A DNA stretch of 64,000 nucleotides from Epithemia pelagica (lineage: Eukaryota; Protista; Bacillariophyta). Both the position numbers and the translations under genes were made by a program. The stretch covers positions 186,001 to 250,000 of the forward strand of contig OX337242.1 of NCBI GenBank assembly GCA_946965045.2. The letters are read 5' to 3'. Every line of letters starts with the position of its first letter. Position 1 is the first letter of the stretch. The notes beneath the pieces were generated by a model. The model saw only the letters and a program-made list of their open reading frames with translations, was not told the origin of the DNA and made no database searches. Below are positions 1 through 23,297 of this stretch, one piece after another.

Positions 1-1794
1 TTCGACGGAATAGTGCCGATGGGGCGAGGGTGTCGGAGTCGCACTGCGATGTCGTGGAGAAGCAGCCGGCGTCGTGGTACGGGACGAGGGTGGCACCACG
101 GATCGACCCCGCGAACGACGTCGGTTGTGTGGACGATCGACACTGTTGGACCGCGATCGAAGACGACGAGGAGGCGGACCCGGACGACGAACCGGACTGG
201 GACTAGCACGACGAGGAAGAGGAGAATGTGACTGGTTGATATTGTTGTGGATCGCTGCATTGCTTGTTGTTGTAGTGTGGGACGAACGAGATTGACTGGA
301 ACTCTTGCTCTCGTTGTTGTTGTTGTTGTTGCGGCGACGAGGGATCCCCAGACTGGTGGACCGCAGTGTCGATGGAGACGGAGAGGATCGTCCGGTCGTT
401 GTTGGTGGCGATGTCGCAGAAGAAGAAGAAGAAGATGATGATGAGAAAGAGGAAGAAGAAGGGGCAGCTTGTACACTATTACTGCGAGAATGATCCCGAG
501 TTGGTGGTAATGGTGGTGATGAGGCCTCCTTCTCCGAGAATTCCTGCGGCGTTTCCTTGTCGTTTGTCTCTCTGTGCGTTGGACGGTTCGAGGGAAAAAG
601 TTCGTCGTCGTCATAATTGTCTTCGGGAGGTTCCAAACACGCTAGAGATGCCGAAATCACTGCCGCCAGGGTGTTGGTGCTTGGATTGCTTGCCACAACG
701 GATAATGTCGAAGAAGAAGAAGAAGAAGAAGAAGAAGAAGAAGAAAAGGATGACGAGATGTCACTTGTTTGGTGAGCAGCCGGGACACTACTGCGAGAAT
801 GATCCCGAGTTGGGAGTGATGAGGCCTCCTTTTCCGAGAGCTTCTGCTGGGTTTCCTTGTCGTTTGTCTCTCTGTGCTTTTGACGGCTCGTGTTTCTGGG
901 AAAAGGTTGGTCGTCCTCAAAGTCGTTGTCGGGAGGTTCCAAACACGCTAGAGATGCCGAAATCACCGCCGCCAGGGTGCTTGTGGATGGCGTGTTGACC
1001 AGGACGGATCGTTTCTTGTTGTTGGTATTGTCCTCGTCGTCATCGTCGTCATCGGTAAATTGTTCCATGAGAATGGGTGGATGGACCGAGGCCCTCCGAG
1101 AATGGCTTTTTCCTCCTCGTTCCTTGTTTCCGCGGTGCTCGGATGGTCCAGCAGTGCTGGTCGTGTTGGTTGTACCGTGCTGGAGTGTCTTGTTGTAGTT
1201 TTTGTGGTTGCGTTCTTCCAGTACTGGTGGTGCTTCTTGTTTGGGTGGTGGTGGTGGTTCTTGTGTTTCTTTTTCATCTTGTTTTGGGTCTTGTTCCGTG
1301 TCAATTTCCACCACATAAAAGGGATCATCCTTCTTGTTGTTGTTGCCGTTGGCTGCTGGTGTAAATGGTTTGGCTGGCACACGAACGCTGTTGCTCCTAC
1401 TTCGGCTCCTACTGGTACGACGACCATGACGATCCAAGGAGGCGTTGCGGGTCGATCTTGTTCGAGACGGAGACGACGAAGCAGCAGAATGATGAGTGGT
1501 GGTTGCATGACTGCTGGCATCTTCTTTGCTGGTTCGAGAAGCTGTTTCCTCGTGGGGTTGCACACGGACGCTGCGACTGACACTGCGGCTGCTGGTACGA
1601 CGACCATGACGACGATCCAACGAGGGGTTGCGGCTCGGTCTCCCTCGAGAAGAAGAAGAAGCAGTAGAGTGGTTCGTGGTGGCATGGCTGCTGCCATCTT
1701 CTTTGCTCGTTCGAGACGCAGTTTCCTCGTAAGGCTGACTTTGTGGCAAAGAATACGAGTCTCGAACCATTGTGTTGGTAGTAAAAGGAGGCAT
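1..1794 (-). CDS. Ser/Arg/Thr-rich disordered protein, 3'-truncated by the window edge (at least 598 aa); absent from the ORF track
   Basis: Manual translation from ATG 1794 (MPPFTTNTMVRDSYSLPQSQPYEETASRTSKEDG...) stays open to base 1 (...RSATPTPSPHRHYSVE). It contains two pairs of internal repeats. The listed ORFs 963..1880(-), 366..998(+) and 1060..2046(+) are off-frame or antisense shadows. Confidence 0.8.
   Translation of the reverse strand, partial: MPPFTTNTMVRDSYSLPQSQPYEETASRTSKEDGSSHATTNHSTASSSSRGRPSRNPSLDRRHGRRTSSRSVSRSVRVQPHEETASRTSKEDASSHATTTHHSAASSSPSRTRSTRNASLDRHGRRTSRSRSRSNSVRVPAKPFTPAANGNNNKKDDPFYVVEIDTEQDPKQDEKETQEPPPPPKQEAPPVLEERNHKNYNKTLQHGTTNTTSTAGPSEHRGNKERGGKSHSRRASVHPPILMEQFTDDDDDDEDNTNNKKRSVLVNTPSTSTLAAVISASLACLEPPDNDFEDDQPFPRNTSRQKHRETNDKETQQKLSEKEASSLPTRDHSRSSVPAAHQTSDISSSFSSSSSSSSSSSSTLSVVASNPSTNTLAAVISASLACLEPPEDNYDDDELFPSNRPTHRETNDKETPQEFSEKEASSPPLPPTRDHSRSNSVQAAPSSSSFSSSSSSSSSATSPPTTTGRSSPSPSTLRSTSLGIPRRRNNNNNNESKSSSQSRSSHTTTTSNAAIHNNINQSHSPLPRRASPSPVRRPGPPPRRLRSRSNSVDRPHNRRRSRGRSVVPPSSRTTTPAASPRHRSATPTPSPHRHYSVE
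476..985 (-). repeat. In-frame internal duplication, period 309 bp (103 aa)
   Basis: actgcgagaatgatcccgagttg occurs at 481 and 790. Both copies encode TLAAVISASLACLEPP...HRETNDKET...SEKEASS...TRDHSRS. Confidence 0.9.
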
Positions 1795-2816
1795 GCTTCT
1801 AGAGAGAGTGTGTGTGTGTATTGTTGTTCTGTCTCTTTTTCTCGAAGCGAAAGAAGAGTGTTTCTCCCCAGATATCTCAAAAATCTCTCTCTAGTAGAAA
1901 ATGAGGAGAGGATTGCAATCCATCAACCGCTGTCGTTCTTGTTGCTGTGCCTGTGTAGAGATTTATCCCTTGTTTTGTCGCCTTCGTTCTTGATGCCGTC
2001 TCGTGCAATCTCACCCCTGGCACTACAAAAGACAATGAATGAATGAATGAGGCAGTGGTGCCTTCTTGTTGTTGTGTGTGTGTGGGTGTCGTATTCGTAT
2101 GTGGTATAGTGGTACACCCCTAAATCTAACAATCCAAAAAACGAACCAAAGTGCCGCCGGAGGACACGGTAAGCGGTAAGAGACGAGTGAGTTGTTTGTA
2201 TTTGTAGTGTGTATGGCTACATTAGTATTTGAGAGTGTTTCTCATAATAGAGTTGTTGGTTTGAAACCAACGACGAGAACGAGACACTGCATCCGGGCTA
2301 GCAACAACTTGGAAAAATGTGGCGAGCAAACCTCGGTTCGATTTTTGGCACGCCGGTATTGCTTGGGTTCGAACAATACTTAGGTAGGCATGCACATGAG
2401 TCTTACCGATACATACGGGCGTGACGCATGCGTCGTTTGCGATGCACATGGTCACCAAATCCAATTATTTGAATGCCCTCCGAGCGGGCACAATGACCCG
2501 CCCAGGATTTGGACGAGTTGTGACTCGTACGCGCCAGACGACAGGACAATCTGACAAACCATGGCTGGTATGCCACAAACCACCGAATCTGGAACTCCAC
2601 ACAAATCCCTTATTATCGTAGCATGGATCCAAAACAAAGCCGTGGTGTTCCACGTTCCAACCGTGCCTATCTTCAGCTACCTACCCTAATCCGAAAGAAA
2701 AGAGAGGGAGTGGACAATCTCTCTCCCCTCTCGCTCTTGCCAGTTTGGATGGAGAGACTACAGTTTCGTGGTGACCAAATCATGCTACTACTCACGTTCT
2801 ATATGGACGCCTTGCA

Positions 2817-4694
2817 CTACCGATCGTACAAGGCGGCATCGGCCAGGAGGGGCATGTTCCGAGACAATGACAAATCATCGACCGAATCCTCGGGCCAATG
2901 AGGCACGACATAGGGTTCCAAGGCATCCGTGCCTTGGGCGGCCAAATCAAAGACGGCTTGACCTAATCGATTGGCCCAAAACTGTCCGTCCATGGTCTCC
3001 TTATTGCTAATGGTGCTGCTGCTATTGTTGATGTTGTCGTGGACGGCACCATTCTCGGAGCAGCAGTCGGTCCAGACGGCCGAGTGTTTGTCGAGTTCGT
3101 CCCACAGCGCTTGGCCCGTTTGGGCAACCAGCTGCTTGGCGGCCATGGGTGTGAGTGTTGTCGTACTACCAGTGTGTGTCGCGACCCATGCCAAGGGTCT
3201 GGGCAAGCCCCATCCAGTGTCGGAGGAATATGCCGTTGCCATTGAGGAGGAAGTGGATGCATCTCCATTGTCCTGGTTGTCTTGTTTTCGGAGACAGTCT
3301 TCCAACCGGCGCCTTGGGAGAATCTCTTGTTGTGGTTGTTGTTGTTGTGTCTCTTTCTTTTCTTCAAACTCCCCGTGAGCTTGACCTACTGGTACATGTG
3401 GTCTAGGTTGTGGGTCCCCAATGACACGCACTGTAGAAAGAGGACGAGGAAGATGACACAGCTTGTCGGTATGGGAGACCGACACGACGGCCGCTTGGTG
3501 GGCATGGTTCAGGACGGTCGTACACAAGTGCTCGGCCGAATCCCATTCCCCAACCATGGCGGATTCCAAGTAATCCAACAGGGTCACGGTATCCTCCTGG
3601 ACCGTGGAATCCAGGTCCTTGTTTTCAGTATAACTGGTGTCACCCTCCGCCTCGTCGTATTCTCGATCCGATTCCAAAATGGGGTCCATGGTTCGATCGA
3701 TAAATCCATCCTGCCAGCTCTGTTCCTGCCATTGTCTATAATCGAGTCTTGTTGTCGTTGTCGTTGTTGGTGTGGTTCGAGGAGAAAAGCCATAGCGGGA
3801 GTTGTGTGTACAGGGGGGCACGGAACGTGGCCTGGTCTTGGACTCGCCCAAAGGTTCGGGCAGTGGCAATTTGTCTTGTTGTGGTTGTGTCTGAAATTTT
3901 TGCCGTGCACCGTCACCTCCGAACCTTGGTGGTGGTGATGGTTCTTTGTCCGTGGAAAGACACGAGATGGGAGAGTGTCGTGTTCCTGGAGTGCTGTCGG
4001 GGACAGAGTGTGGACCGTTCGGATCCACCACCATTCGTGGTGTTGGAGTGGTGATGAAATCCTTTGTACTCCCCATAACGTCGTGTTGCTGCCGCTGTGG
4101 TTGCTGCTGCTGCTGCTGCAGTGGCTTGTGTTTGTGTTTACGAGTGTTCTTGTTCTTGTGGTGCTGAAACAGCTTCCTTCCCCTGATCCACCGTCGTTGT
4201 TCTAGATTTTGCTCTCTTGTTTGGATGGGATGATTGATCAATTCCACCGAGGAGGGTCGAATTCGTACCAACAGCTGTTGGCTCCGTTCCTCCTGTTCGG
4301 GCTCCTCATGTTCCACCTCGGCATTTCCTCGACCATTATCATTACCCAGGTTCCTCAACGAGTCATCACCAATTCTTGCTCTACTGCTGCTTCTGCTGCT
4401 GCTGCTTCTCCATGGTGATGCTTGGACGGACTCGATCCGGTCCGAACGGTCCTCGTCGGAATCTTGGATTGAGGCGTTTGTCCAAGTACCACTTGTCCTC
4501 GTTGTCTTGTGGTTGTTCTTGCCTTGACTTGGACGTTCTCGTTTCTGGTTGGGGACCAACCATTGAGGCTGTTCGGGTCGTGGCCCCTGGATGGAACGAT
4601 GATTGTTCATGGAGGATCCTCCCTTGTCCACGACTTTTTGGGAGGAATTGGTCGTGGCCTGGGATGCCAATGTTGTCCGTCGATGGCGTATCAT
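2817..4694 (-). CDS. Disordered protein of the tandem array; C-terminal helical motifs (QALWDE, LGQAVFDL, AAQGTDAL)
   Basis: 653-aa ORF, first ATG at 4694; S/T/Q-rich; motifs shared with neighbours at 5456 and 22202. Confidence 0.8.
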   Translation of the reverse strand: MIRHRRTTLASQATTNSSQKVVDKGGSSMNNHRSIQGPRPEQPQWLVPNQKRERPSQGKNNHKTTRTSGTWTNASIQDSDEDRSDRIESVQASPWRSSSSRSSSRARIGDDSLRNLGNDNGRGNAEVEHEEPEQEERSQQLLVRIRPSSVELINHPIQTREQNLEQRRWIRGRKLFQHHKNKNTRKHKHKPLQQQQQQPQRQQHDVMGSTKDFITTPTPRMVVDPNGPHSVPDSTPGTRHSPISCLSTDKEPSPPPRFGGDGARQKFQTQPQQDKLPLPEPLGESKTRPRSVPPCTHNSRYGFSPRTTPTTTTTTRLDYRQWQEQSWQDGFIDRTMDPILESDREYDEAEGDTSYTENKDLDSTVQEDTVTLLDYLESAMVGEWDSAEHLCTTVLNHAHQAAVVSVSHTDKLCHLPRPLSTVRVIGDPQPRPHVPVGQAHGEFEEKKETQQQQPQQEILPRRRLEDCLRKQDNQDNGDASTSSSMATAYSSDTGWGLPRPLAWVATHTGSTTTLTPMAAKQLVAQTGQALWDELDKHSAVWTDCCSENGAVHDNINNSSSTISNKETMDGQFWANRLGQAVFDLAAQGTDALEPYVVPHWPEDSVDDLSLSRNMPLLADAALYDR

Positions 4695-5455: not shown

Positions 5456-7786
5456 TCAACCTTCCAAGTGTTTTTCCAACAGCGTAGGCTTCCTTGTCGG
5501 ACGGTTTCCTCCCTTCTTGGCAAGACCTTGTTCTCCCGAATGTTGTGTTTCAAACGACATAGTGTAGGGCATGGGGATTGCCCCCAACTGATTGGTGGCG
5601 GAGCGGGGAATATTGAGGAGGGTATAGGCCACTGCATCCGTTGCTTGGGCACTGTTAATATACACTTGACTGGCACCATTCCAAAGAGCTTCCGTGAAAG
5701 ACCATGAAGATGCCTTGCCGTCCTCCTGTTTGTCCAAGTTGCGGGCCGTCATGCTAGCGTCGGATGTCATATTGTGAATCGTTGTATTCACTATATTGGC
5801 CACGACGGATCCCGTCTCGGTCACATATTCCGCCACGACGGTTCCCGTGTCGCTCAAGGCTCGACCAAAAAAATTGGCCAAGTTGCGGGCCGTCATGCTA
5901 GCGTCGGATATCATATTGTGAATCGTTGTATTCACTTCATTGGCCACGACGGATCCCGTCTCGGTCACATATTCCGCCACGACGGTTCCCGTGTCGCTCA
6001 AGGCTCGACCAAAAAAATTGGCCAAGTTGCGGGCCGTCATGCTAGCGTCGGATGTCATATTGTGAATCGTTGTATTCACTTCATTGGCCACGACGGGTCC
6101 CGTCTCGGTCACATATTCCGCCACGACGGTTCCCGTGTCGCTCAAGGCTCGACCAAAAAAATTGGCCGTGATGGGTGAATCGTCGCTGTCGTCGACGCTG
6201 CTATCTTCATCAGGGTCATCACCATTATCGTCATAATAAGTATCCACCTCGTCGTCGTCTCCTCGATCCAACCAATCCTTATCCGGACGGTCGGCCTTCT
6301 TGGCTCCTCTTTGTTCAATCCTCAGTACCCGTCGACCGTAGCGTTGGGAATATCCAAGAGTGTCCTCTGTCGCATCCAGTATGTTACACAGCATTTGAGC
6401 AACTTCACCTTGAGGATGCTCCTGTTCCATCGTCCGTTCGGATCGTTTCGTGTCCAGGTAATTTCCTAAGGAGACGCGACTGGACTGCTGACTGGATTCG
6501 GCTGGTGGTGGTGGGGGAGATGCATCTTGAGGTTTAGTGCCTTGGGTTGCCGTTGCCTTTGCTGATTTGTGTTTGTGGAACAGACTGAATGGTCTTGTTG
6601 TCTTGTCGGGTGTACTGCTCGTCGGACCTTTTTTCTTGGTTACTACCATCTTGGATTGTCGTGCCTTATTGGGTACCTTGGATTCACTGTTCGGTCCTTT
6701 CTTATTTGTGGATGTTGAGTGCTTGGCCTTTATCGTACTGGATTCCTTGATTGGCCCATCCGTTGTGGTTGCCCTACTGGTCGGCTCTTTCTTCTTGGTC
6801 GTGGTGGTAGCCACAGTGGATTCGTTTGCCGTCGGTTCCTTGGTTTCCGTATTGGTCGGCTGCTCTTGAGGATTCTTGATGGTCGAAAGAAAGAAGGAGG
6901 GCCACATGCTGTTGTTGCGAGACAATGCCAGAGCTGAATCGGTCTTGTGCACAGTCGATTCGTTTGTCGTCGGTTCCTTGGTTTCCGTAATAGTCGGCTG
7001 CTCTTGAGGATTCTTGGTGGTTGTCGGAGAGTCCATCGGAGAAGCTGACTCGGGTTTGGAGTCGCTGCTCGTCGACGAAAGAATCATGGAGGACGACATG
7101 CTGTTGGTGCGAGACGGTGCCAGAGCTGGACTGGGCTTGTTGGTGGTCGCCACAGTGGATTCGTTTGTCGTCGGTTCCTTGGTTTCTGTAGTCGTTGGTT
7201 CTTGAGGATTCTTGGTGGTTGTCGGAGAGGCCATCAGAGAATCTGAATCTGGTTTGGAGTCGCTGTTGTTGTGAGACGGTGCCTGAGCTGGAGTGGGAAC
7301 GAACCGGTAGTCGACAAGTTCGACCGATTCTTCATGGCTTTCAATGTTGACTTCCGATGGAGCCTCTTGGGTCGCAGTTCGTTCCTCCTTGCTTGGTTGC
7401 TTCAATCGACTCGGTTCCTCTTCCTTTGCGGCAACAGACGAGTGCTGGACGCTTTCGTCCCGTTGTTCGTCTTGCAATGGTTGTTGTTGTCCTTGTTCTG
7501 TCAATAGTGTTGGAGTCTCTTGCAAGGTTTCTGGCGCAACTGTCGTTTGTTCAAGAGGCGTGGCAACTGCCGAGTTGCTGTCAACGGAGGAAGCAGGAGC
7601 CTTGTTGGAGGTCTGGACGACAAAACCTCGTTCGGAAGAAGAGGACGACGGATTCACCACCTTACTAGAAGTAGACGACTGCTCCACCCCCTCGGATTGT
7701 TTCATCGAGCCTTTTGAACTCCATGGCTTGTCGCGACGACTGGTCGATTTCCTCGAGTTTCTTGCCTTTCGCATATTGAAAACCAT
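5456..7786 (-). CDS. Disordered protein of the array, with Thr/Glu/Pro repeats and 3 x 48-aa amphipathic repeats
   Basis: 786-aa ORF, first ATG 7786; carries ANFFGRALSDTGTVVAEYV x3, EALWNGA, SAQATDAV. Confidence 0.85.
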   Translation of the reverse strand: MVFNMRKARNSRKSTSRRDKPWSSKGSMKQSEGVEQSSTSSKVVNPSSSSSERGFVVQTSNKAPASSVDSNSAVATPLEQTTVAPETLQETPTLLTEQGQQQPLQDEQRDESVQHSSVAAKEEEPSRLKQPSKEERTATQEAPSEVNIESHEESVELVDYRFVPTPAQAPSHNNSDSKPDSDSLMASPTTTKNPQEPTTTETKEPTTNESTVATTNKPSPALAPSRTNSMSSSMILSSTSSDSKPESASPMDSPTTTKNPQEQPTITETKEPTTNESTVHKTDSALALSRNNSMWPSFFLSTIKNPQEQPTNTETKEPTANESTVATTTTKKKEPTSRATTTDGPIKESSTIKAKHSTSTNKKGPNSESKVPNKARQSKMVVTKKKGPTSSTPDKTTRPFSLFHKHKSAKATATQGTKPQDASPPPPPAESSQQSSRVSLGNYLDTKRSERTMEQEHPQGEVAQMLCNILDATEDTLGYSQRYGRRVLRIEQRGAKKADRPDKDWLDRGDDDEVDTYYDDNGDDPDEDSSVDDSDDSPITANFFGRALSDTGTVVAEYVTETGPVVANEVNTTIHNMTSDASMTARNLANFFGRALSDTGTVVAEYVTETGSVVANEVNTTIHNMISDASMTARNLANFFGRALSDTGTVVAEYVTETGSVVANIVNTTIHNMTSDASMTARNLDKQEDGKASSWSFTEALWNGASQVYINSAQATDAVAYTLLNIPRSATNQLGAIPMPYTMSFETQHSGEQGLAKKGGNRPTRKPTLLEKHLEG
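5735..6166 (-). repeat. Three near-identical 144-bp tandem coding repeats (48 aa each)
   Basis: Units start at 5735, 5879 and 6023 (caagttgcgggccgtcatgctagcgtcgg...) with only a few substitutions between them. Confidence 0.95.
6810..7300 (-). repeat. Imperfect coding repeats (KNPQEQPTxTETKEPTxNESTV, about 3 copies)
   Basis: Recurrent ctcttgaggattcttg and gattcgtttgtcgtcggttccttggtttc blocks. Confidence 0.8.
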
Positions 7787-8857: not shown

Positions 8858-11113
8858 TTACAACACAAGGGGAAAAGGCTCGCCACCATTTCCTTGCCGT
8901 TTCTTCTTCTTGTTTTTCACAGTAGGCACCATGAGTTCCTCCACGGCTAGTGCCGATTCCGAAAGAGCCTGGTCAAAGAACTCGGCATTGGGTGTAGTGG
9001 TATATTCGCTTACACTCCGACCTTCCAACTCTCCCACAAACTTGGTATAGCCCATCATTTCCGCCACGGTCAAAATGGCATCGTCAAAGACTCGAATGGG
9101 TGTATAAAACGATTGTTCCTTGTGGCTTTTTGGATCGGACCATTCCGTCAAGGCGGATGTAACCGAATTGCTACCAGTCGAGGAGGATGCTGACGACGAG
9201 GATTCGATGGAAAAGCGTTTGGGATATACCTCTTTCTCCACCTTCATGGTGTTGTTGTTTTCTTGAATGGTAACTGTTTTGTTCCCTGTTCTTTTGGATG
9301 GATGAAGAACGGATGGCGAGGATTCTTTTGGAGAAAGGTTGGTGGTCTTGGGGGAACGCGGTGGACTTATTGTCATGGCTTCCTCGTCGTCTTCGCTAGC
9401 TCTGGTAGTCTTGTCGACTGGACTCGTAGAGTTTGGAGATTTGATTCCATCCGGCGATTGGTCGCGAGATTTTCGTGCCGTGCTTTCCTTTGCAAGAACC
9501 TCTTGGGAATCCTGTGTTCCCGTGTTCGGACCAAGAATGGTTCCTCCTTCTTGTACTATCTTGTGTACCATACCATTGGTTTTGGTGGAGCTGGTCATCA
9601 ACGTCTTGTTACCCTTCGTTGGTGTAGTAGTCTTTTTCTCCGTCTTTGGAGAAGAGCTCTTGTTGGTGGCGCGTTTTTCCTCCTTCTTGGAGGAATTTGA
9701 CAGAGCAATGATCTCTTTGGTTTGGGGAACGACGCGACCCTTTTGTTCGTTTGATGGCACGGAACTACCACCCGACGACGACAATGTTTCTTCCGACTGG
9801 TTCGAACTCAACGATCCTCGTTTTCTACGGAACAGCGTTTCTCGAATGGACTTTTGTTTCATTTTCTTGGTAGCTTGTTTTGCTGGAGTGGCCGTCGTCG
9901 TCGTTGTCGGAGTAGGAGGCACCTCCTAGTTGGCAGTACTTGGGTTGGCAGTGGTTTGGGTAGTGCTCGAAACGACGCCATTCTTGTTGGTGTGATTCTC
10001 GGTTGCAATCTTCTTGTTGTTGATGTTACTGCTGCTGTTTGGGGGCTGTTCGGTTTCTTTCTCCTTGTTCTCCTTGTTCTTATTCTTATTCTTGTTGTTG
10101 TTGGATTCGTCGGCCTTTTTGTTCATGGACGCGCGTCGAGACGCCAAGGAAATGACCTTTTTGTGGAGCTTATTCTTGATGGGAGCCGTCCCATTCTTGG
10201 TGGTGGCTGTGGTGGTGGTGGTACAAGGAGTTTTCTCCTGGTCCAGAACCGTGGGTGCGGAGGAGTCTTGGTTGGTGGGTTGCGGCGAGGGAGAATTGGG
10301 ACCTTGGGGTTCGGTGGGAGTCGTTGTTGTTGTACAGGTGGAAGATTTTGCCTCCTCATTCTTGTCCGAGGAAACGACTGCGTCCTCCTCTGAGGCCACG
10401 ACAGCTTTGGGCGGCGGCGGTGGCGGAGGTGGAAGAATATCGTCCTTGGTGGAGAGAGTTTGCTTAATGGAGGATGCTTGGGACAGTAAGGACGTGAATT
10501 GCAATCTCCAGTTCGACGACGACGACGCTGATTCCTCCTTTGTGGGTTCTGGTGACGTCGTTTGCAATGCCTCGGAGTAGGCTGATCCACCGGGTTGATA
10601 GGTTTCGGAAAGATTGTCCTTCAAGGAGGACAGGAGTTGAAATTGCACGATGGAAGCCTTGGTGTTCTTGTCGTCCGCCTTGGGGGTGTCTTCGGCCTTG
10701 GTGGTGGTAGTGGTAGTGGTGGTATCCTCCAACGATTGTTTCGTGGTCAACACCGAACCGGCTTTGCTTTCCTCGTGTTGACGATGATGATTTGGCAATG
10801 GTTGCACCGCGACCACGCTCGATTCTGATGGCGCCATCGCAGTTGCTTGTTTCGCCTGTGGCTGGCGTTGGTTTGTCTTGGGGAGGGATGGTTGACTATT
10901 CGTTGTAGACGGCGACGTTCTTGATGAGATGGACGAATTGTCCTCATGACGATGATGATGATGATGATGATTCGACAATGGATCCACTGAGGCAACATCC
11001 ATCGACGATTTCGGTGAAGATATCACCGTTGCTTGCTTTGCCATTTGCTTCACCTTTTGCTTACGCTTCAGCATCTTGGAGAGAGATGATCTGCTATTCT
11101 TCGACGATGGCAT
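8858..11113 (-). pseudogene. Array member (about 750 codons) split by one in-frame TAG at 9926-9928; disrupted allele or assembly error
   Basis: ORFs 9926..11113 and 8858..9922 are in the same frame and read ...NPSTAN*EVPPTPTTT.... The downstream part has no ATG start and carries DAILTVAEMMGY (9047-9082) and PNAEFFDQALSES. Confidence 0.75.
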
Positions 11114-14643: not shown

Positions 14644-17600
14644 TCAAGCCCAACAGGGCATGGGACAGGCTGTGGGGTTCGTGCTGGTACTATGCCACAA
14701 ACTCGTCGTCGTTAGCGTAAAAGATCGTGGGTCGTCATGGTCGTCGTCATCCTTGTCCCTCAGTTCTGGATGGTCGTCCTCGAGGAATCCAAACATCTCA
14801 CCCGTGGCCAACCAAACTTCCTTCGCCAAGGCCCTGGGACTCTGGAGGCAGGAGGGTTGCGAGGACTCTTGCGAAAGACTCCAATCTTCATGGGTGGACA
14901 AGGAACCGTCAGCACCATCGTCGTCGTCGGAACCAACAAGGGATGGCTTTCCGGGTGGCTCTCCTACTCGGCGGGTATTTCTATCGGTCGTCATGGGTCG
15001 CCCGGATAGTTTGGAAAAAGGCCGAACCGGGCCAGAAAAGAGTTTGGACCATTTCCACGAATGCGGTTGGGGCGAAAAGGGTTTGGAGGTGGAGGCGGAG
15101 GACGACACGGAACGAAGACTGGTACTCCGGCCAATAGAAAACAACTTTTTGATACTCTTGTTGGACCGTTTCAATTTGTTGTTGTGGTTGGGGCTGGATG
15201 GTTCCGCATCCTGTTGTTGCGATTGCTCCGTTGGGTGGTGGATACGACGGTTCGCCCGATTCAACTCTAAAAAGGGATCCGTTTCGGTTCCTTCAGGAGA
15301 GACGTCTGGTTTGTGAGGAATGTCGTCGTGGCCTTGTTGTTGCTGATGACGAGAATGCTGGCTCAGTGTGGTTCCCAGTGGCGTGTTGTTCCATCCACCC
15401 CCTTGTTTTTCTGGTTTTGTTGGAGCGGTACCCTTATAGGACGTGTCGTCAATCGTCGAAACACTATCCAGATCTCCTCCACCAACAAGACTGGTTGACG
15501 ACAGTGTGCGATCCAACGTGAGTGATTCAACATCTTGTAGACTCTGCTCTACCAACGGATCATCAGTGTTCATCAGTTCTTGCAAAAATTCCGCAATCGT
15601 CCCTGAGACGGTCAAGTCCTTGTCCAGATTCTTATTGGGATACAAGAGTGCATTAATTTCCATCAGAACCTGTGCTTCGTCGTAGTCCAAGGAGGACATG
15701 CCGTAGTTATCGTCATCGTTGTTGTTGTCATCATGTGATGAACGAGACTCCAAACTCTGGATTCGGTCGTCCTGACTTTCGTTGGAAACATAGTCTAGAA
15801 TTCGTTGCGTGATAAATGAGACATCTCGAACCTCTGGCGACTTGCCCGTAGGATGGTCTGTATTCTTGCCCGAAAAACTAGACATTTCTTCAAGGAAGCT
15901 TTCGGAATGATCAATGGCCTCGATAATGACAGGATCTGATGTCTCCTGGGCACCTTGGTCCGTGACCGCTGCTTCACACTGTGGTGCATCCTGCCGCTCT
16001 AATACTGGTTCTTCTGAAACTGTATTGCTGCTGAGATCCTCTCGAGTCGATTGTCCCACTGTCGTGTCCACGGCACTGTCGGGAGTTTGTGTTGTGGCGG
16101 TGGTGCCTTGTGAGATGCTTGCCACACTGTGGGAATGACTGGTGCTATTGGCGTCCCCAGAAGAGAGTTTCTTGGGTTTTAATACGATCGACCCTTTTCG
16201 TGGCTCGACCGAAAGAGTGTCGTTTGTTGTTGTCATGACCGAAAGAGAAACTGGGTTCCTCTTTTTCAAGCTGCTGCAGTGTAACGACTTGGTCCGGGCC
16301 AAGAGTCGTTTCACAAAGGTAGCTGTCGGTTTCCGTTCGACCACTTCTTTGTTCGGTTCTCTTTCATGCCATGTCACTTCAAAGGCGTCATCGTCCTCCT
16401 CGTTGTCTTTGGTCAGGGCAAGGACAAGAGTCTTTTGTGGCTGTTCCGTATCCAGTACGGTGTCCTGTTTCCCCGTGTAATCGTCTCCTTGTCTCCCCGT
16501 CATGGGTTGGTCTGGTCCCTCTGCCTGGTCCTGCGTTGGTATAGGTACAACAGGTAAGGACTGTGTATTAGCAGTTCCTGTCCTACCGCCATTCCTTTGG
16601 CGTTCGGTCGATAGATCTGTCTCGTTGTCCATACTGTCTCGTAGGAGCGAATTGTCGTCGTTGTCTCTGGATGGAGTTCCTACGTACTCCCCCGATACAG
16701 TAGAATCGTGATTATTACCACCACCATCTCCACTGTCTGCCACCTGTTCAGCATGTTCTTCTTTTCCTTCGTCTTCGTCTTTTGTAGGCAAGGATTTTGG
16801 TGGCATTGGTCTGGATGTGGAACCCATTCGCGATCGTTGTGGTGGTGGTGCTTCGTGTTTGGTGGTGAGGTTTGTACTAGTGTCGGGTGCTTTGGTGTCC
16901 TTGGTGATGCATGACTCTGTCGTTTGGGTCGCTGCTGTCCTATTGTCTTGTTCTTGTTCTTCTTTCAGGTCGTCGTCGTGGTCATCGATCGTGGATGAAC
17001 ATTCGAGTGGGACAAAGGCCAAGGGAGAACGAGGACGAATCGATACCCCACTGATTCGTCGCAAGGACCTCCTTCGTTGTGTTTTGTCCTTTGGACGAAT
17101 GGTTGGCGTTGGGACGCTCTCAATCTGTTTCGTTGTGTGTGTTGTATGTGGTTCGCCCGACCACGATTCCTTGTCGTGAGGTGCTGGTTGTGGAGTATCC
17201 CCATGTTGTTTGTTGGGTGGTTGCTCTTGTGTGCTAATTCGATTGTTGCCAACTTGTTCCTGATACTCTTGTTGTTGTTGTTGTTGTTGTTGTATCGTTT
17301 CATCCTCATCCTCACAAGTAGTAGAAGCTGTCGTGACCAGCTCGGTTTCCAAAGCTTCGTAGTCTTGTTCCTCCTCTTCTTGGTCATGTTCTTGTTGCTG
17401 TTGTTGTTGTTCCGAAGAGGGCGTGACAAAGGCCCGAAAGGGTGAGGCGGGCATGTGACGAATCGACACCACCATGTGGTTGGTGGTTCGTCGTCGTTGT
17501 CGTTCTTTTTTGGGTTGTCGGGTGGTCGTGGTAGAAGTTTTGGAAGCCATATCCTCCTCCTCCTCCTCCTCCTCCTCCTCGGTTTCGTCCCCCACAGTTT

Positions 17601-18207
17601 CGTGTCGTTCCTTGTTGTTTGTGCCGCATGCTTCGAATGGTTCTCGATCCTTGTCGTTGTCGTCATTGTACTCCGCCTCCTTGTAACGTTCTGTCGTATC
17701 CACCAGCAGTCCTCCCATGGTTCCTCCTCCCGGACGTGTCGGTACCACCAAACTGTGGCGTCGTCGTCGTGGTCGCGACCTTGGCGTACTGTTCGTATTG
17801 GTGTCCTTGTGATGAACCGGACTGTCTTGTCGTTTCTCATTCGTGTCCTCCCGTACATCCGGCTCTGCTGGTTGGGACACGTGCGTCAACAAGTTTGTGG
17901 TCAAAGACCACCGCGTTTCTTCCTCCACCACCATCACCATGGTCCTGGTTGTTCCTTGCCATAATACATCCTCTTCCTCCTCATCGTCGTCATCATTTAG
18001 CTCGTTTTGGTGATTTTGGGACACGGACGACGGACTATTGACAAATGGGATATAGGAGGAATTTCGAGACCGCATCATTCGTGATACAGTGGTTCGTTTC
18101 GTTCGACCAGTTCGTGGTGCTTTGCTTCGTTCCATTGAGCCCGGATGGAGCGGAGATCGTGCCGAACGAGCCACTGGTGTGGCTAGACGATTCGATTCGT
18201 CTCGCAT
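14644..18207 (-). CDS. Large (about 1190 aa) acidic disordered protein of the array
   Basis: 1216-aa ORF, first ATG 18207; C-terminal KEVWLATGEMFGF (14785-14820) and FTLTTTSLWH resemble motifs in the neighbours. Confidence 0.85.
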   Translation of the reverse strand: MRDESNRLATPVARSARSPLHPGSMERSKAPRTGRTKRTTVSRMMRSRNSSYIPFVNSPSSVSQNHQNELNDDDDEEEEDVLWQGTTRTMVMVVEEETRWSLTTNLLTHVSQPAEPDVREDTNEKRQDSPVHHKDTNTNSTPRSRPRRRRHSLVVPTRPGGGTMGGLLVDTTERYKEAEYNDDNDKDREPFEACGTNNKERHETVGDETEEEEEEEEEDMASKTSTTTTRQPKKERQRRRTTNHMVVSIRHMPASPFRAFVTPSSEQQQQQQEHDQEEEEQDYEALETELVTTASTTCEDEDETIQQQQQQQQEYQEQVGNNRISTQEQPPNKQHGDTPQPAPHDKESWSGEPHTTHTTKQIESVPTPTIRPKDKTQRRRSLRRISGVSIRPRSPLAFVPLECSSTIDDHDDDLKEEQEQDNRTAATQTTESCITKDTKAPDTSTNLTTKHEAPPPQRSRMGSTSRPMPPKSLPTKDEDEGKEEHAEQVADSGDGGGNNHDSTVSGEYVGTPSRDNDDNSLLRDSMDNETDLSTERQRNGGRTGTANTQSLPVVPIPTQDQAEGPDQPMTGRQGDDYTGKQDTVLDTEQPQKTLVLALTKDNEEDDDAFEVTWHEREPNKEVVERKPTATFVKRLLARTKSLHCSSLKKRNPVSLSVMTTTNDTLSVEPRKGSIVLKPKKLSSGDANSTSHSHSVASISQGTTATTQTPDSAVDTTVGQSTREDLSSNTVSEEPVLERQDAPQCEAAVTDQGAQETSDPVIIEAIDHSESFLEEMSSFSGKNTDHPTGKSPEVRDVSFITQRILDYVSNESQDDRIQSLESRSSHDDNNNDDDNYGMSSLDYDEAQVLMEINALLYPNKNLDKDLTVSGTIAEFLQELMNTDDPLVEQSLQDVESLTLDRTLSSTSLVGGGDLDSVSTIDDTSYKGTAPTKPEKQGGGWNNTPLGTTLSQHSRHQQQQGHDDIPHKPDVSPEGTETDPFLELNRANRRIHHPTEQSQQQDAEPSSPNHNNKLKRSNKSIKKLFSIGRSTSLRSVSSSASTSKPFSPQPHSWKWSKLFSGPVRPFSKLSGRPMTTDRNTRRVGEPPGKPSLVGSDDDDGADGSLSTHEDWSLSQESSQPSCLQSPRALAKEVWLATGEMFGFLEDDHPELRDKDDDDHDDPRSFTLTTTSLWHSTSTNPTACPMPCWA

Positions 18208-19416
18208 GCTGTTGTTCTTGGTAAGGAGGTGGTTCAATGGAAAAAAAGAGGAGGGGTGCTTCCGATCACACCAATGTATATAGTCCCAGATCAATCGGAC
18301 CGACTTGTAGAATATTTGTGTCTATCCAAACGTTTGGGAATACAAGAAACTTCACGTGAGAAGTGTGCTCGTACTCGTTTGCAATTGAAATAAAGAATTG
18401 TCGTGAGAGATGGATTCACACACTCTTTCCAGTTTGACGGGTCTGACCAATCTCCGCATGGTGCGCACCTCCTACTAGTTCGGCTCGCAGAGGCATAATA
18501 CTATACTCTGCTTCGCCTCATTTCTTTCTTTCTTTGGGTTGTACCGCAAAGGCTGTTGTTGTTGCTGTATCGTCTGGAACTGCCCGGCCGCCTTCAGATC
18601 TATTATCTTTCAACGCACTCTCTCTTGTGTCACATACACAGTAACGCAGGCAAGGCCCCTTGCTCTTTTAGTTGGCTTGGCGCACCCCCAAACTACACAT
18701 ATGTTGTGATGTTGTTGTTACGGCAAAGCCATGGCGAGCTGCGCCAACCTTGAACGGGGCTTACCAACTGGGGTGCGCCATGGCCCCAAAAGGCCAGCGC
18801 CTCCAGCGGTAAAAGTTTTTCGAGTCCACTCCAACGCTCAGGGTTCTCTTTTCGTGGTCGCAAACGCGACCACTCTGTGCGTGCTCGCAGAAGCTTCTCA
18901 GGCGACTCAAGGAAAGAACTACTATATGACACAAAACATGAATATCTATGTATACCATCCTCGCACGCTCCAGAAGACGACCCACCCTCTGGATGGTCCA
19001 TTGACTCACAATCATTCTCAAGCTATTCGAGAAGAGTGTGAATCTATAATATTTCTCTACTACTAGTAGAAGAGCTAGGAGAGAAGGAATCGAACCAGAA
19101 AGGTCAACTCTCACAACGAAACTAGTTAGTTTATATCATCGATCCGCAAAAAACCAATGGTCCGACCACAGGTTTTTGCGGCAACGACATTCGCTCGCGC
19201 AGGATTGTTGTTGTTTGTATTTACGACAAACTAGAGGCATCCACAATGTTGTAGTGTGTGTAGAAAGGCATGGAAGGTTGTGTAGTACAATCACAGAAAG
19301 AGAACAAAGGTGATGATGAAGATGATGATGATGAAAGTTCATAGGCATGTGCGTCGACTAGTGCTGATGTGTACCAATCCATGGAGCTTGCCGTACCATC
19401 CTGGAAGGAAGGGGGA

Positions 19417-21122
19417 TTATTGCTGTGGGATATTGCACAGAGTCGGCTCAATGGTATCGTCATCATCGTCGTCGACGGCCGTGGACATCATATCCTGCAG
19501 TCGTTCCTTGCCAATCCAGGCTTGGGCCTTGTTCCACGACGCGGTACGAATACTGGTGGAAAAATTCGTCATTTCTTGTTCCGTCTCCTTCATATTGGTG
19601 GCAATGGTTTGCAAAAAGGGCGCCTTATCCGTTTGCAATTCTGGTTGTGTCACCCAATCCGTCATGGCCTCCTGAAAAATTCCGGATCGGGCGGCGTACC
19701 GACACTGCTGGGTGCCGTACTAGCATTGCTGGAATCCACACCGGAATAGCCCAAAAATTCAGCCGTGGTAACAATGGCATCCTTGAGCAAGCCATCGGGA
19801 AACCACGACAAGGTGTCCTTATTGTCGTAGTTATGGTGGTGGTGGTGATTGGTGACGACCAGACTGGTCGAGTTTCGGCTGGTGGTTGTGTTCCGATGCG
19901 TATCGTCCACATCGCTAAAACTCGCGGTGGAAAGGGTGGCATCCTCCGTCTTTTCATCCTCACTGCTAGTCCCGGTGTTGTTGTGGTGGTGGTTGGGGGT
20001 GGTTTTGCAAAAGGTGACCACGCGTGGTGTCCCCATGGAGGAACGGTTGTTGTTGTTGTTGATGGGCGTCGAATATGGAGAGGGACGCTTGAGAGCAGGA
20101 GGGGCGTCATTGTCGGGCAATGTTTGGGTCATGTAGGACAAGGACTCCAAGGAGGTGGCTCCGATCGAGGGTGGGTGGTCCGTAGTCGTGACTCCCGACG
20201 CAAAAGGGACGTTTTGGTTCTTGTTGTTCATGTTGTTGTTGTTGTTGTTCTGATTCTTGTCGACAGAATCAGATGCTGGTTGTCGTTGTGCCGATCGACG
20301 GGGACTCGGAGTTTGACGACGCCGACGCGGACTGGGCGTGGAACGAGCACTGCTGGTACCACGGCGACGACGAGGTGTACTGGGGCGACGACGACTTTTA
20401 GACGGACTAGTATTGGTGGCGGTGGTACCACTCGTCGTCGCCATCATCATGGGGAGACCACTACTCGTAGAATGACTCACGAGAAGAAATTCTTCGCCCG
20501 TCTTGACATTGACCAGCTTGAATGGCTCTGGAGATTCCACTGGAGAAGAAGACGGATTGGCAGCGGCCTTGACTGGTACGGATTCCTCAGTTTCATCTTT
20601 TTTTGCTTCCTTCGGTTTCGCTTGCGGCCTTGTTATTGTTGCTGTTGCCGGATTGGACGCCGCCTGAACTCGTCGAATAGGAGTGACTTGTCGACGAGAC
20701 GAACGAGAGGCACTCGATTGTTTGGAGGATTTTTTGGGCAACGCCGGCCTTCTCGTATTCGAAGCGACCGTGACACGCTTGGAGGGAGACTTGCTTCGTC
20801 GAGTCCTTGTCTTTTTTCCAGTAGTATTAGTAGCAGGTGACTTGGTGGTGGCTCCAACAACTAGGTTCTTGTCGGTAGTAGAAGGAATATCTTGTTTGGG
20901 GCCTGTGGTTGCCTCGGGTACTTGTGCCAGTCGCGGCTTCTCAACGGCAATGCCTCTTTGTTGTTGTTGTTTCCATGACTTGTTGTTTCGAACCGAGGCT
21001 CGGTGAAGACTGCTCGAGGCACTCAAACTCACATCATCCTGGGGAGGAGGAGGCAATAGTTGGGTCACCATGTCGAGGGGGATCCCCATATTCATGTTAT
21101 TGCCGCTTGGAAAGGCTTGCAT
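19417..21122 (-). pseudogene. Array member with one -1 frameshift in an A5 run (19675-19679); disrupted allele or homopolymer error
   Basis: ORF 19662..21167 ends PDPEFFRRP*. Adding one T on the coding strand gives PDPEFFQEAMTDWVTQPEL, which joins ORF 19417..19665 and restores the family FFxxAL motif. DAIVTTAEFLGY at 19746-19781. Confidence 0.75.
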
Positions 21123-22201
21123 CTTCTCCTGCAACAATAACGATGAGTTTGATGGCTCAATACACAATGGTCAAGAAGGAGGAGAAGGAAGAGAAGAAGA
21201 AGGAGGAGGAGGAAGATGTTGGACCACAAAGAAAAACACTGAGATTCTGACCTCGTGACCTGGGTGTTTTGAAATGCTGAATCTAACAGACGCATTATTC
21301 TGGATTCTTGTGTTGATCGTATAGGGGCCTAATAGCAGAGTTACACCCGGCGAACGACACAACCTATCGCATCCGGTTCATGTTCATGTGGATCCTTCCC
21401 TTTTCGATATAATAGGTAGTCGTGGGGAACCAAAGAAAAATAGTGAGCCAACGTCAATCGTCATCAATGTTTGTATTTTGTGTATCGAAACATATGTCAG
21501 GGTTGCTATTGTTTGCTAGGAGTACCTTCTTATTGTGGCGGTGAGCCTCGTAGCGAAGGACGGACGACTTACAGACAAACCTGTGGATAAGTAATGGTTT
21601 TTATTCATACATGTAGTGTACCAGCACGTGCTTACTTATTTTGCAAGACCGAATCACAATTGAAATTTTCTGGGGAACTCCGGCCGGTCTTTCGTCCCTC
21701 TCTCACAAATTGATGGACACGAACAATCCTACTTATGGTGTGTGTGACCCACCGAATCGAGACCGTTGGGGTTGGAGACAACGACGAATGCACTCGTTGT
21801 CCTGGTTGGTTGGGCACTCTCGTCGAGGCACTCGGCATGAGGACAGACGGTTTTAGGAATACCTTGTTTAGTCGGTGGGTATACTAGTATAGATTGGATC
21901 TCGTCGTGTTGTGAGTTGTGAGAGAATGCCTGCAACCGTGGAAGCCAATGCATGGATCGATTTCATCCTATATTACAATATGTCACCTACATTCCTTCAT
22001 CCGCGTGCCCGGAATGACACACAAATAATGGAACCAGAAACTACAAAATAAGAATTGGCATGGACGAGCTAGATACTGTAGGAATACGACAGAATATATA
22101 CTAAGAGTTCCAGAAGTAGTAATCACTGGTTCTGACGATCATGTAGAAACCCATTTCCGAGAATGGCCCACACACATCGAATTCATTCCACACTCGACTA
22201 C

Positions 22202-23227
22202 CTAGTCGATGGGATCTGAACAGCAAGAAACAGAAGGAAACACGACAATCATCACCATTGGAGCTTTTTTTCTCGTTTTCGTTGGTATTGCTTGGTTGCT
22301 ATACCGGACAAGCACATTCGATGAGGACGTTTCCTCCTTTTTCCCCTCGGTCGTGGCATCTGGCGGAGACATCTCAGTTCGAGAATCGTCATTTGCTGCC
22401 GTGGACGACACGAGTTCGTTCCAGTGTTCCTGGCCCATCCTCCAGGCTTGTGCGGCCGGGGTCCACGAAAATTCAATCACGCGAGGAATGTCCGGTTCCT
22501 TCGTGTCGTGCAGGTCGTCGTCCTGGTTGTGGTCTTGCGTTTGGGCCCATGTGCTGCTGGTCCACTGGTACATGGCATCTGTCACGGCCTGTCCCAAAAA
22601 GGTGGCATTGGGTGGGGCTCACTCTTCCACATTGTGAGTATCGACTGGGTCCTGCTGCTCCTCCTCATTGTCCTTGCCCTGTGACTCGTCGTGTACGACT
22701 CGGGGCATGGGTTTGGTTTCTTCTTCTTGGTTGTTGGTAGGACTATTACTAGTACTACTACGGGAAGGAGTGTATCCAAGCAACTCGGCCGTGGTCAGGA
22801 CGGCATCGTTCCACAAACTGGTCGTGGTAAAGTAGTAGTCATAAAAGTCGTCGTCGTCATCGTCCCCCACGACTCCATGGTCCTTGGACAAGGAGCCAGC
22901 GGAGGAATCCGTGGCCACCCAGGACCTGGTGTCGGAGGAGGAGGACGAGGAGGACGACACGGCGACCACGGGGTCCCGAAAGGAGACCGAGGAGGACGAC
23001 GACGACGTTGGTATGGTCTTTTGGTTGGTCCTTCTTTTCTGGGGAGAAGAAGACCGTCCCCGCCAGAACCGAGAGAGTCCTCGTCGATTCGAATAGCTCG
23101 TCGGCACGATCTCTTGGTTGGAGAAGGAACTTCCTGCTATTGTTTCCTCTTCGGACACTTGCTCATCATTATCATCATCTGGATGGTATGATGACTCATT
23201 CTCATCATCACTGGAGTTCTCGGGCAT
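22202..23227 (-). pseudogene. Array member split by one in-frame TGA at 22619-22621
   Basis: ORFs 22619..23227 and 22202..22597 are in the same frame and read ...HNVEE*APPNATFLGQAVTDAMYQW.... FTTTSLWNDAVLTTAELLGY lies upstream (motif 22772-22807). Confidence 0.75.
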
Positions 23228-23297
23228 TTTGGAAAGGTGTGAAGGGCAGATGAATGAGGGTTTTTGCTACGTTTAGGGACTTTCCGGTAGTCCGGGT

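Follow-up and report, generated by a model that had tools for sequence, protein, structure and literature searches.

The seven consecutive genes on the minus strand of the Epithemia pelagica DNA analysed here (the window, 64,000 nucleotides, positions 186,001 to 250,000 of contig OX337242.1) are the left-hand array, one half of a larger family on chromosome C18. The reading that we favour, and hold to be fairly probable, is that this family of disordered proteins is undescribed and restricted to Epithemia, and that the C-terminal module shared by its members is a docking or localisation tag.

Results

Genes of the left-hand array

The source strain of the assembly is E. pelagica UHM3201, and C18 is the chromosome that carries the window. 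A preliminary description of this DNA had reported seven co-oriented genes for disordered proteins without long-range similarity, six of which shared short C-terminal motifs (A to D). The count of seven holds when G4a and G4b are merged into one gene, G4: the premature stop codon of this haplotype cuts an upstream ORF of 411 residues (395 from the first ATG) off from the module, while the other haplotype has AAG for TAG and one uninterrupted 768-aa ORF. The charge-hydropathy boundary classed all seven products as disordered, none of them contained a hydrophobic segment, and BLASTP matches were confined to the motif-A/B stretches, as had been claimed. Every motif string quoted earlier was recovered on the minus strand, at or near its position; motif A of G3 (NILDATEDTLGY) and the module of G1, which lies to the left of the window, had been overlooked.

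Table 1. Features of the left-hand array and of the related genes on C18 (window positions unless marked C18)
Feature	Position	Strand	Remarks
G1, window part	1..1794	-	1207-aa ORF continuing to C18:184270, 1.7 kb left of window
G1, A+B module	C18:184654-184932		1.1-1.3 kb left of window; 84.9 bits (profile)
G2, orphan disordered-protein gene	2820..4694	-	coding by haplotype dN/dS
G2, motif strings	2946-2969; 3096-3113; 2919-2942	-	RLGQAVFD; QALWDE; AAQGTDAL
G3, family member	5459..7786	-	112 bits in total; one helix A, triplicated helix-B unit
G4 (G4a + G4b), family member	8861..11113	-	85 bits
G4, premature in-frame TAG, this haplotype	9926..9928	-	AAG in other haplotype
G5, probable member	14647..18207	-	helix-A-like EVWLATGEMFGF; TTTSLW at 14692-14715
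G6, family member	19420..21122	-	44.5 bits
G6, T5 run one base short	19674..19679	-	1-nt frameshift inside helix B, this haplotype
G7, family member	22205..23227	-	
G7, probable intron, 144 nt	22618..22761	-	from sequence; GT..AG, phase-1; in-frame TGA 22619-22621 within
Motif A (helix A)	9047-9082 (G4); 19746-19781 (G6); 22772-22807 (G7); 14785-14820 (G5); 6350-6385 (G3)	-	
Motif B (helix B)	8957-8992 (G4); 19657-19691 (G6); 22577-22612 (G7); 5849-5878, 5993-6022, 6137-6166 (G3)	-	
Right-hand array genes with C-terminal A+B module	C18:361966, 364910, 369871, 380882, 382757, 391721	+	window-built profile

The significance of the motifs was assessed with profiles built without the tested gene, against composition-preserving shuffles. 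G6 scored 18.2 bits and motif A of G7 11.4 bits, values that none of 1000 shuffles reached in either case, and motif B of G7 scored 7.2 bits (2/1000). Motifs A and B are thus significant; motifs C and D, at 4-8 residues, are too short to count as evidence on their own. G1, G3, G4, G6 and G7 are clear members of the family, with helix A, linker and helix B at the extreme C-terminus and scores above composition shuffles. G5 is a probable member by sequence likeness: its motif A scored 5.6 bits with the held-out profile (1/1000 shuffles), the stretch of an acidic run and TTTSLW is common to G5 and G7 (0/2000 shuffles), and its nearest relatives are the E. clementina TATEMFGF members; helix B was looked for in G5 and was not found. 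In place of the six motif-sharing genes claimed earlier, the seven genes thus comprise five certain members, one probable member and G2, whose membership is unproven. G2 is a real coding gene, with dN/dS of 0.37 and indels of 3, 3 and 9 nt between haplotypes. Profile searches of G2 for the A+B module gave no match and its motif scores were not above shuffles, its weak pairwise likeness to the repeat region of G3 was reached by 9 of 2000 shuffles (uncorrected), and its own allele was the only relative found in a homologue search.

The G3 gene encodes a 48-aa unit in triplicate, each copy with helix B at its start, and the unit ANFFGRALSDTGTVVAEYV aligns with AVFFDRALGESDRLVAEYV of G1; its dN/dS between haplotypes was 0.96, a value derived from few substitutions. 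Contigs of runs X1 and X2 have an extra base in the T5 run of G6, which leaves the frame open 85 residues further. Two of the seven genes, G4 and G6, carry disabling alleles in this haplotype. The 144-nt stretch between the helices of G7 is probably an intron, and the alternative reading is a coding linker bearing a nonsense codon; the stretch has many variants, including a 1-nt insertion in another haplotype contig. Co-regulation of the array, suggested earlier, was not borne out: the upstream spacers of the seven genes had no 8- or 9-mer common to at least five of them, and the Myb-type box YCAACGGAY was not enriched in the window (5 found, 3.2 expected) and occurred in no family promoter. 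Nor did any result point to lipid bodies, the sexual cycle or valve morphogenesis, the processes proposed earlier for the array.

The C-terminal module

Motifs A and B are parts of one C-terminal module of about 60-90 residues, which is composed of helix A (consensus φφxDxWLxxAELLG[YF], often then S-K/R-Y/F-V), an acidic linker, an SQxTP cap and helix B (xAxFFDxAφxxS). The linker varies greatly in length, with about 15-20 residues in most members, about 60 in G3 and, if the G7 transcript is spliced, about 6 in G7; some members have helix A only. In many members helix B is followed by P-W and a polybasic Lys/Arg tail (KNKKKK, RRSRRK, KKKVPKK, WRRKK), which is absent in several clear members, e.g. 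G1, G6 and P0014. AlphaFold2, run on 14 sequences, predicted both motifs to be helical, as had been anticipated, with helices at residues 4-17 and 41-59 (block-mean pLDDT 76 and 81), a disordered linker and no packing of the two helices against each other (pTM 0.29); the predicted pattern is that of binding motifs, not of a folded domain. The motifs had also been called amphipathic, a term that the data do not support: the hydrophobic moments are modest, 0.07-0.46, and for the most part shuffled sequences reach them too. Each helix has a net acidic charge, and the flanks are strongly acidic. With this net acidity and the modest moments, the helix chemistry is better suited to a protein groove than to an anionic membrane.

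The FFAT motif (EFFDAxE, set in a tract of acidic residues) is a ligand of the MSP domain of VAP, and the module resembles it in having acidic residues ahead of F-F-D (EFFDQA in G4). It was rejected on alignment A4, in which position 5 is K/Q/R/N/D and not small (Ala) and position 7 is L/M/I and not acidic; moreover, the module stretch is predicted to be helical, whereas FFAT is extended. LSm14/Scd6 proteins have an N-terminal LSm domain, an FDF motif and an FFD box followed by a TFG box, and the FFDxxxS-like string in a disordered C-terminal region is similar to the FFD box. This candidate was also rejected, as Pfam found no LSm or FDF domain and alignment A4 has no TFG after helix B. The p53 transactivation helix, FxxxWxxL, is an acidic-hydrophobic binding helix of a disordered protein; helices of this type are likewise short and acidic, with F/L-W-L on one side, and isolated in disorder, but the analogy is in kind only and there is no sequence relationship.

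Distribution and evolution of the family

Profile searches of the E. pelagica genome gave no matches outside C18. Those on C18 lie at 184-209 kb (minus strand), at 301 kb and at 362-395 kb (plus strand), so the family has at least 13 genes (about 14) on a single chromosome: two tandem arrays that face outward, and a lone gene at 301 kb. Random scatter of the matches over unrelated proteins would have spoken against a family; the module is found repeatedly at the very C-terminus, in the same A-linker-B order, and is confined to the C18 arrays. Between the two haplotypes of the sequenced clone the array differs by the G4 nonsense codon, the G6 frameshift and whole extra genes, and in the other haplotype G4 and G6 are both intact. 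These haplotype-specific genes and nonsense and frameshift alleles therefore indicate that the family evolves by birth and death. In G4a, G4b and G2, dN/dS between haplotypes was 0.17-0.37 and all indels were multiples of 3.

An hmmsearch of 1.84 billion representative proteins gave 17 matches, of which four were tandem-repeat artefacts and the others came from E. pelagica itself or from E. clementina, and the module was found outside E. pelagica only in Epithemia clementina. The profile has 68 positions and needs about 36 bits against this library, at which divergent diatom relatives could escape; at this sensitivity the family appears to be restricted to Epithemia. At least eight E. clementina members are co-oriented on JBGMNV010000204.1, with two sub-clusters (ACA910_008787-92 and 008808-09) that are 16-22 gene numbers apart, and near-copies are found on two further contigs; the array arrangement is thus kept in the second species. 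In one E. clementina member the reading frame shifts between helices A and B. Together with the disabling alleles of G4 and G6 and the helix-A-only members, this shows that individual copies are under loose constraint.

Between E. pelagica and E. clementina orthologues the module alone is alignable and the remainder is about 25% identical; for P0002 and P0010, overall identity was 25% and windows of at least 50% identity were present only in the last ~80 alignment columns. Species labels are intermixed in the module tree, which contains one cross-species pair with 88/88 support, and the two species split about 35 My ago by the estimate of Frail et al. The earlier view, that the paralogue array is old and evolves fast and that conservation in it is limited to small helices, agrees with these data. 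The absence of a named family was likewise confirmed in the databases searched: no Pfam-A family reached its cut-off on the pieces of G1-G7, the E. clementina members have no Pfam hit on record, PDB sequences gave 0 profile matches of the module at E <= 10, and the ESM Atlas gave no match to the module family.

Discussion

Our favoured reading is that the module acts as a tag for docking or localisation. Its two short acidic-hydrophobic helices would most likely become folded when they bind a protein partner or surface common to the members, and the basic tail would assist their docking. The module would gather very different disordered chains at the same place, and the variable chains would supply gene-specific activity, e.g. 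spacing, scaffolding or coating. Alternatively, helices A and B, the Trp and the polybasic tail may form a peripheral membrane anchor that binds acidic lipid, so that the family coats one membrane. Many members do end in P-W and K/R runs, and G3 multiplies helix B plus an 11-residue-periodic extension, but the hydrophobic moments lie mostly within the shuffle range, both helices are net negative between strongly acidic flanks and clear members lack the basic tail, and we regard such an anchor as unlikely. The K/R tails also look like monopartite NLSs, G6 and G1 have SPRR/RS-type basic Ser-rich tracts, and basic N-termini such as MKFLRFKRRNS and MMRRRWF are present, all of which would suit nuclear or chromatin proteins whose helices bind a nuclear partner; these features are compositional, however, and the restriction to Epithemia would be left unexplained, which makes a nuclear role rather improbable.

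The disabling alleles of G4 and G6, the frameshifted E. clementina member, the presence or absence of whole genes between haplotypes and the dN/dS of G3 could be read as signs of a functionless orphan array, with motifs merely inherited from a recent ancestor and genes drifting to loss. Against this, the module has been kept for about 35 My (Frail et al.) while the remaining sequence became saturated, G2 and G4 show low dN/dS and only frame-preserving indels, G4 and G6 are intact in the other haplotype and the arrays are kept in both species, and we judge simple decay very improbable. Chance likeness of short strings in low-complexity proteins is hardly credible as an explanation of the family: it may still apply to motifs C and D, for their shortness, and to G2, whose matches did not exceed shuffles, but it is refuted for motifs A and B by the held-out scores of G6 and G7 and by the ordered module, with which at least 13 E. 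pelagica genes and at least 8 of E. clementina end.

If the module is a localisation tag, its destination may be the diazoplast. Six host-encoded proteins were enriched in purified E. clementina diazoplasts, and three of them (Ec_g24166/03819, Ec_g12982 and Ec_g13000) belong to OG0000250, a domain-free orthogroup that E. clementina has in common with E. pelagica alone (Frail et al. 2025; PMC12377750). It is possible, and we propose it tentatively, that our family is OG0000250 and that the module takes host proteins to the diazoplast, either to its surface or inside. Both are found in E. clementina and E. pelagica and in no other diatom, have several members and lack domains; the large size of the module family fits the low orthogroup number, and its E. 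clementina sub-clusters, 16-22 gene numbers apart, are comparable to the 18-gene gap between Ec_g12982 and Ec_g13000. There are also near-copies on other E. clementina contigs, and the family was already diverse when the species split, close to the time at which the symbiosis began. On the other hand, the match is one of spacing and properties; the near-copies P0009 and P0018 differ by one residue and are therefore not the 'identical' pair of that paper; the two species have 1,109 unique orthogroups in common; and the authors concede that the enrichment may have been non-specific (PMC12377750). For OG0000250 the same paper gives neither a motif nor a terminal extension.

The C-terminal UCYN-A transit peptide (uTP) of Braarudosphaera bigelowii is similarly a conserved C-terminal motif region on nucleus-encoded proteins in the host of a Crocosphaera-related nitrogen-fixing endosymbiont. 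Several hundred proteins are imported, many of them with metabolic or information-processing functions; most (62%) bear uTP, which is apparently cleaved (PMC12176269). In contrast, the module is present only on about 14 paralogous disordered proteins in arrays, and the two are set apart by description, not by sequence. By its distribution the module does not look like a uTP-type transit peptide, since profile searches of the genome find it only in the C18 arrays and not on many unrelated conserved carriers. More speculatively, and with considerable doubt, the family could be the diazoplast-enriched orthogroup and the module the first recognisable host signal for delivery or attachment to a diatom nitrogen-fixing endosymbiont, an independently evolved counterpart of uTP. 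Its emergence and expansion would then date from about the time when the symbiosis began, and its turnover between haplotypes would be continuing.

Epithemia is a leading model of a nitrogen-fixing bacterium becoming a permanent cell compartment, and the published view is that the host adds almost nothing recognisable to the endosymbiont. Defined here is a large, fast-turnover, Epithemia-only family with a sharply conserved C-terminal tag, which gives, through the profile, the two-species gene list and the natural truncation alleles, a handle on the question whether the endosymbiont is a destination of host proteins. Even without a link to the diazoplast, the family offers a clean natural case of disordered proteins whose terminal docking module is almost the sole target of selection, and in which birth-and-death evolution can be seen between the two haplotypes of one clone.

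Results

Seven co-oriented genes and their proteins

Epithemia pelagica is a diatom with a nitrogen-fixing cyanobacterial endosymbiont (diazoplast), and the assembly of strain UHM3201 comprises 60.3 Mb in 21 scaffolds and two organelle genomes, chromosome 4 measuring 4.03 Mb and the alternate haplotype forming an assembly of its own (PMC11167328). The nifH gene was not found in the E. pelagica assembly because the endosymbiont genome was deposited separately. The window spans C18:186001-250000, and the seven genes G1-G7 at its left end (left array) are co-oriented and encode disordered proteins, as the preliminary description had proposed: all are on the minus strand within 1-23227, disorder-promoting residues make up 69-77% of each product, all products fall below the charge-hydropathy boundary and hydrophobic segments occur in 0/7. 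The motif strings quoted in that description are all present at their positions, and its statement that the seven lack long-range similarity agrees with BLASTP, in which similarity among the proteins was confined to short motif stretches. A Pfam search of all pieces of G1-G7 gave no match. A full-length ABC transporter gene (1467 aa, two ABC_membrane and two ABC_tran domains) is divergent from G7, the spacer between the two measuring about 560 bp.

Positions of left-array genes, family modules and associated features (bare numbers, window; C18, chromosome; L036, contig of the alternate haplotype at G4)
Feature	Position	Strand	Remark
G1	1-1794	-	module carrier; continues past left window edge
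G1 module	C18:184654-184932	-	just beyond window
G2	2820-4694	-	
G3	5459-7786	-	module carrier
G4	8861-11113	-	module carrier
G4 in-frame TAG	9926-9928		separates G4a from G4b
G4-G5 spacer, primary haplotype	11162-14646		3.5 kb
Composition shift in spacer	12001-14000		
G5	14647-18207	-	
G6	19420-21122	-	module carrier
G6 T5 run	19674-19679		missing base
G7	22205-23227	-	module carrier
G7 interrupting segment	22618-22761		144 nt
G7 in-frame TGA	22619-22621		between helix A and helix B
ABC transporter gene	23786-28189	+	
Lone module gene	C18:300793-302229	+	
Right-array module genes	C18:361966, 362889, 364910, 369871, 380882, 382757, 391721	+	
Stretch upstream of G4, alternate haplotype	L036:1-6313		6.3 kb
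Complete extra member	L036:3901-5187		45.7 bits
Weaker extra member	L036:119-1135		

The C-terminal module and its carriers

Motifs A and B are the two halves of one C-terminal module. In an alignment of 14 modules (A4; module sequence SIGNIFICANCE), helix A has the consensus φφxDxW(L)xxA(E)LLG[YF], often continued by S-K/R-Y/F-V, and is followed by an acidic linker, an S-Q-x-T-P cap and helix B, xAxFFDxAφxxS, after which many members carry P-W and a Lys/Arg run. Most members have a linker of 15-20 residues; G1 has one of about 46 and G3 one of about 60, and that of G7 would be about 6 residues if a putative intron is spliced out. G3 has a single helix A, overlooked in the preliminary description, and a 48-residue unit, starting with helix B, that occurs three times; the AVFFDRALGESDRLVAEYV of G1 is matched by ANFFGRALSDTGTVVAEYV of G3. 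The N-termini of G3, G4b and the gene at C18:300793 are alike and basic (MVFNMRKARNSRKS, MKFLRFKRRNS and MKQKSIRETLFRRKRGS), and similar basic N-termini of several members may represent a second, weak family motif.

A profile made from clear module copies was searched against the whole E. pelagica genome and matched chromosome C18 only; the full member list came from a six-frame scan of C18:106-436 kb. The locus at C4:1502566 was a chance match and is not a family member. Significance was assessed with a profile built without the tested genes (no G7 sequence) and 1000 composition-preserving shuffles each, the interrupted products of G6 and G7 being searched as separate pieces. The motifs stood out from the shuffles: G6 scored 18.2 bits (0/1000 shuffles), helix A of G7 11.4 bits (0/1000), helix B of G7 7.2 bits (2/1000) and helix A of G5 5.6 bits (1/1000). 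The latter is nearest to the E. clementina members with TATEMFGF, and an acidic run with TTTSLW is common to G5 and G7 (0/2000 shuffles). The claim that six genes share C-terminal motifs therefore stands for the modules of five, G1, G3, G4, G6 and G7, with G5 a probable member through its helix A. It is not supported for G2, for which profile searches and shuffle tests gave no module support and whose C-terminus shows only a pairwise similarity to the G3 repeat region (9/2000 shuffles, uncorrected). On their own, motifs C and D are not long enough to count as evidence.

Haplotypes and interrupted genes

The left-array genes are real coding genes. Over 10 kb of the G1-G4 stretch the primary and alternate haplotypes are 96.4% identical, a divergence of about 3.6% that is locally very high, and the frames of G2, G3, G4a and G4b are open in the other haplotype, with all indels multiples of three. 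Haplotype dN/dS was 0.37 for G2, 0.17 for G4a, 0.33 for G4b and 0.96, from few substitutions, for G3. Directly upstream of G4 the alternate haplotype holds a stretch without counterpart in the primary C18:106-436 kb, with one complete and one weaker extra family member, whereas the primary haplotype has a spacer and then G5; P0015 is an extra member in the right array of the alternate haplotype. These differences in gene content are birth-and-death evolution within one diploid clone. Within the G4-G5 spacer the GC content falls to 0.449 and the sign of the AT skew is reversed, a composition shift that may have been left behind by the haplotype difference.

Three left-array genes are interrupted. 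At the TAG of G4 the alternate haplotype (ENA ERZ21939226 ctg1353l, L036) has AAG and one ORF of 768 aa; G4 is therefore a single gene, heterozygous for a nonsense allele. Helix B of G6 is broken by the missing base in the T5 run; with the additional base present in contigs from the DNA runs X1 and X2 the frame is open for another 85 residues, and run X4 agrees with the window. In G7, the segment containing the TGA is bounded by GT and AG, and the exons on either side of it join in phase, so that, judged from its sequence, it is probably an intron. The alternative is a nonsense allele within a coding linker; the segment is variant-dense, and another haplotype contig has 1 nt inserted in it. 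Within 19200-23300 of the window, compared with runs X1-X4, exon 1 of G7 also differs from other haplotype contigs by many SNPs and small indels.

Distribution and conservation

An exhaustive hmmsearch with the module profile over 1.84 billion representative proteins returned 17 matches, namely the gene calls of E. pelagica itself, E. clementina proteins (KAL7563488, KAL7563489, KAL7563491, KAL7563511 and KAL7556024) and four artefacts (P0008, P0011, P0012 and P0016), which are not members, their scores being sums over unrelated tandem repeats. Word-indexed searches with the C-termini of G4, P0009 and G2 found nothing beyond self or allele, and the sole database relative of G2 is its own allele. 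The E. clementina members are co-oriented in arrays on JBGMNV010000204.1 (locus tags 008787-008792 and 008808-008809), and two other contigs carry copies 97-99% identical to them. In ACA910_008788 (L030:8300-8500) and its near-copy L034, helix A and helix B are put out of frame with each other by 1 nt within a run rich in A. This frameshift is either a genuine allele that decouples the helices or an error that the Nanopore-based assembly makes systematically in homopolymers.

The preliminary description had envisaged a fast-evolving paralogue array keeping only small helices, and the comparison of species bears this out: the orthologues P0002 and P0010 are 25% identical overall, and windows of at least 50% identity occur only in the last ~80 alignment columns, which are the module. 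Members from the two species are interspersed on the module tree (support of the P0002/P0010 pair, 88/88), and therefore the family diversified before the species split, for which Frail et al. give an estimate of about 35 My, close in time to the origin of the symbiosis. The gene at C18:369871-373200 (L006:3871-7200) and its orthologue P0010 both start basic (MMRRRWF and MRWRFGANRRKK) and have an N-terminal TH[ATS][DE]F[FI]L repeated twice, as THADFFL and SHADFIL in E. pelagica and as THTDFFL and THSEFFL in E. clementina. Between P0007 (C18:364910-369295) and P0017 the sole conserved island outside the module is [LM]x[KN]RF[YH]xAVG[VLI]M, an internal motif that resembles helix A and occurs repeatedly in the protein from E. 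clementina.

Predicted structure and promoter motifs

AlphaFold2 on A4 predicted helices at residues 4-17 and 41-59 (block-mean pLDDT 76 and 81), a disordered linker and no packing of the helices together (pTM 0.29). The motifs are thus predicted to be helical, as had been supposed, and their proposed amphipathic character was not upheld: both helices are net acidic, with modest hydrophobic moments mostly within the shuffle range. The family matches no named one, since, besides the blank Pfam search, a PDB sequence-profile search with the module found no relative and an ESM Atlas search by features no usable match. A WH2-like reading of helix A with SKYV was rejected (the register differs in A4 and Pfam is blank), and the same alignment led us to reject helix B as a FFAT motif.

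Co-regulation of the left array, also suggested earlier, is not supported. The Myb-type box YCAACGGAY occurs 5 times in the window against 3.2 expected and in no G1-G7 promoter, its core CAACGG is at chance level in the left array, and no 8- or 9-mer is common to at least five of the seven spacers.

Discussion

Our results establish a previously undescribed family of disordered proteins, restricted to Epithemia, with the anatomy and conservation of the C-terminal two-helix module that defines it. The family lies in two arrays, in which genes are still gained and lost, and is more extensive than the preliminary description had recognised. We infer that the module is best read as a tag for docking or localisation. 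Its two short acidic-hydrophobic helices would fold upon contact with a shared partner, the Trp and polybasic tail would assist docking in many members, and the fast-evolving disordered chains could thereby be gathered at one place.

In diazoplasts purified from E. clementina, Frail et al. (2025, PMC12377750) reported enrichment of six proteins encoded by the host, three of which belong to orthogroup OG0000250, and the module family may be this orthogroup. The two have the same distribution and both lack domains, the module family is large, and the 18-gene gap from Ec_g12982 to Ec_g13000 fits the spacing of the two E. clementina sub-clusters, which are separated by 16-22 gene numbers; however, 1,109 unique orthogroups are common to E. 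pelagica and E. clementina, and we regard the identity as a lead that is rather unlikely to be correct. The uTP of Braarudosphaera (PMC12176269) is also C-terminal and would be a parallel to the module if the identity is true, in which case the module could be put forward as a host signal for the endosymbiont.
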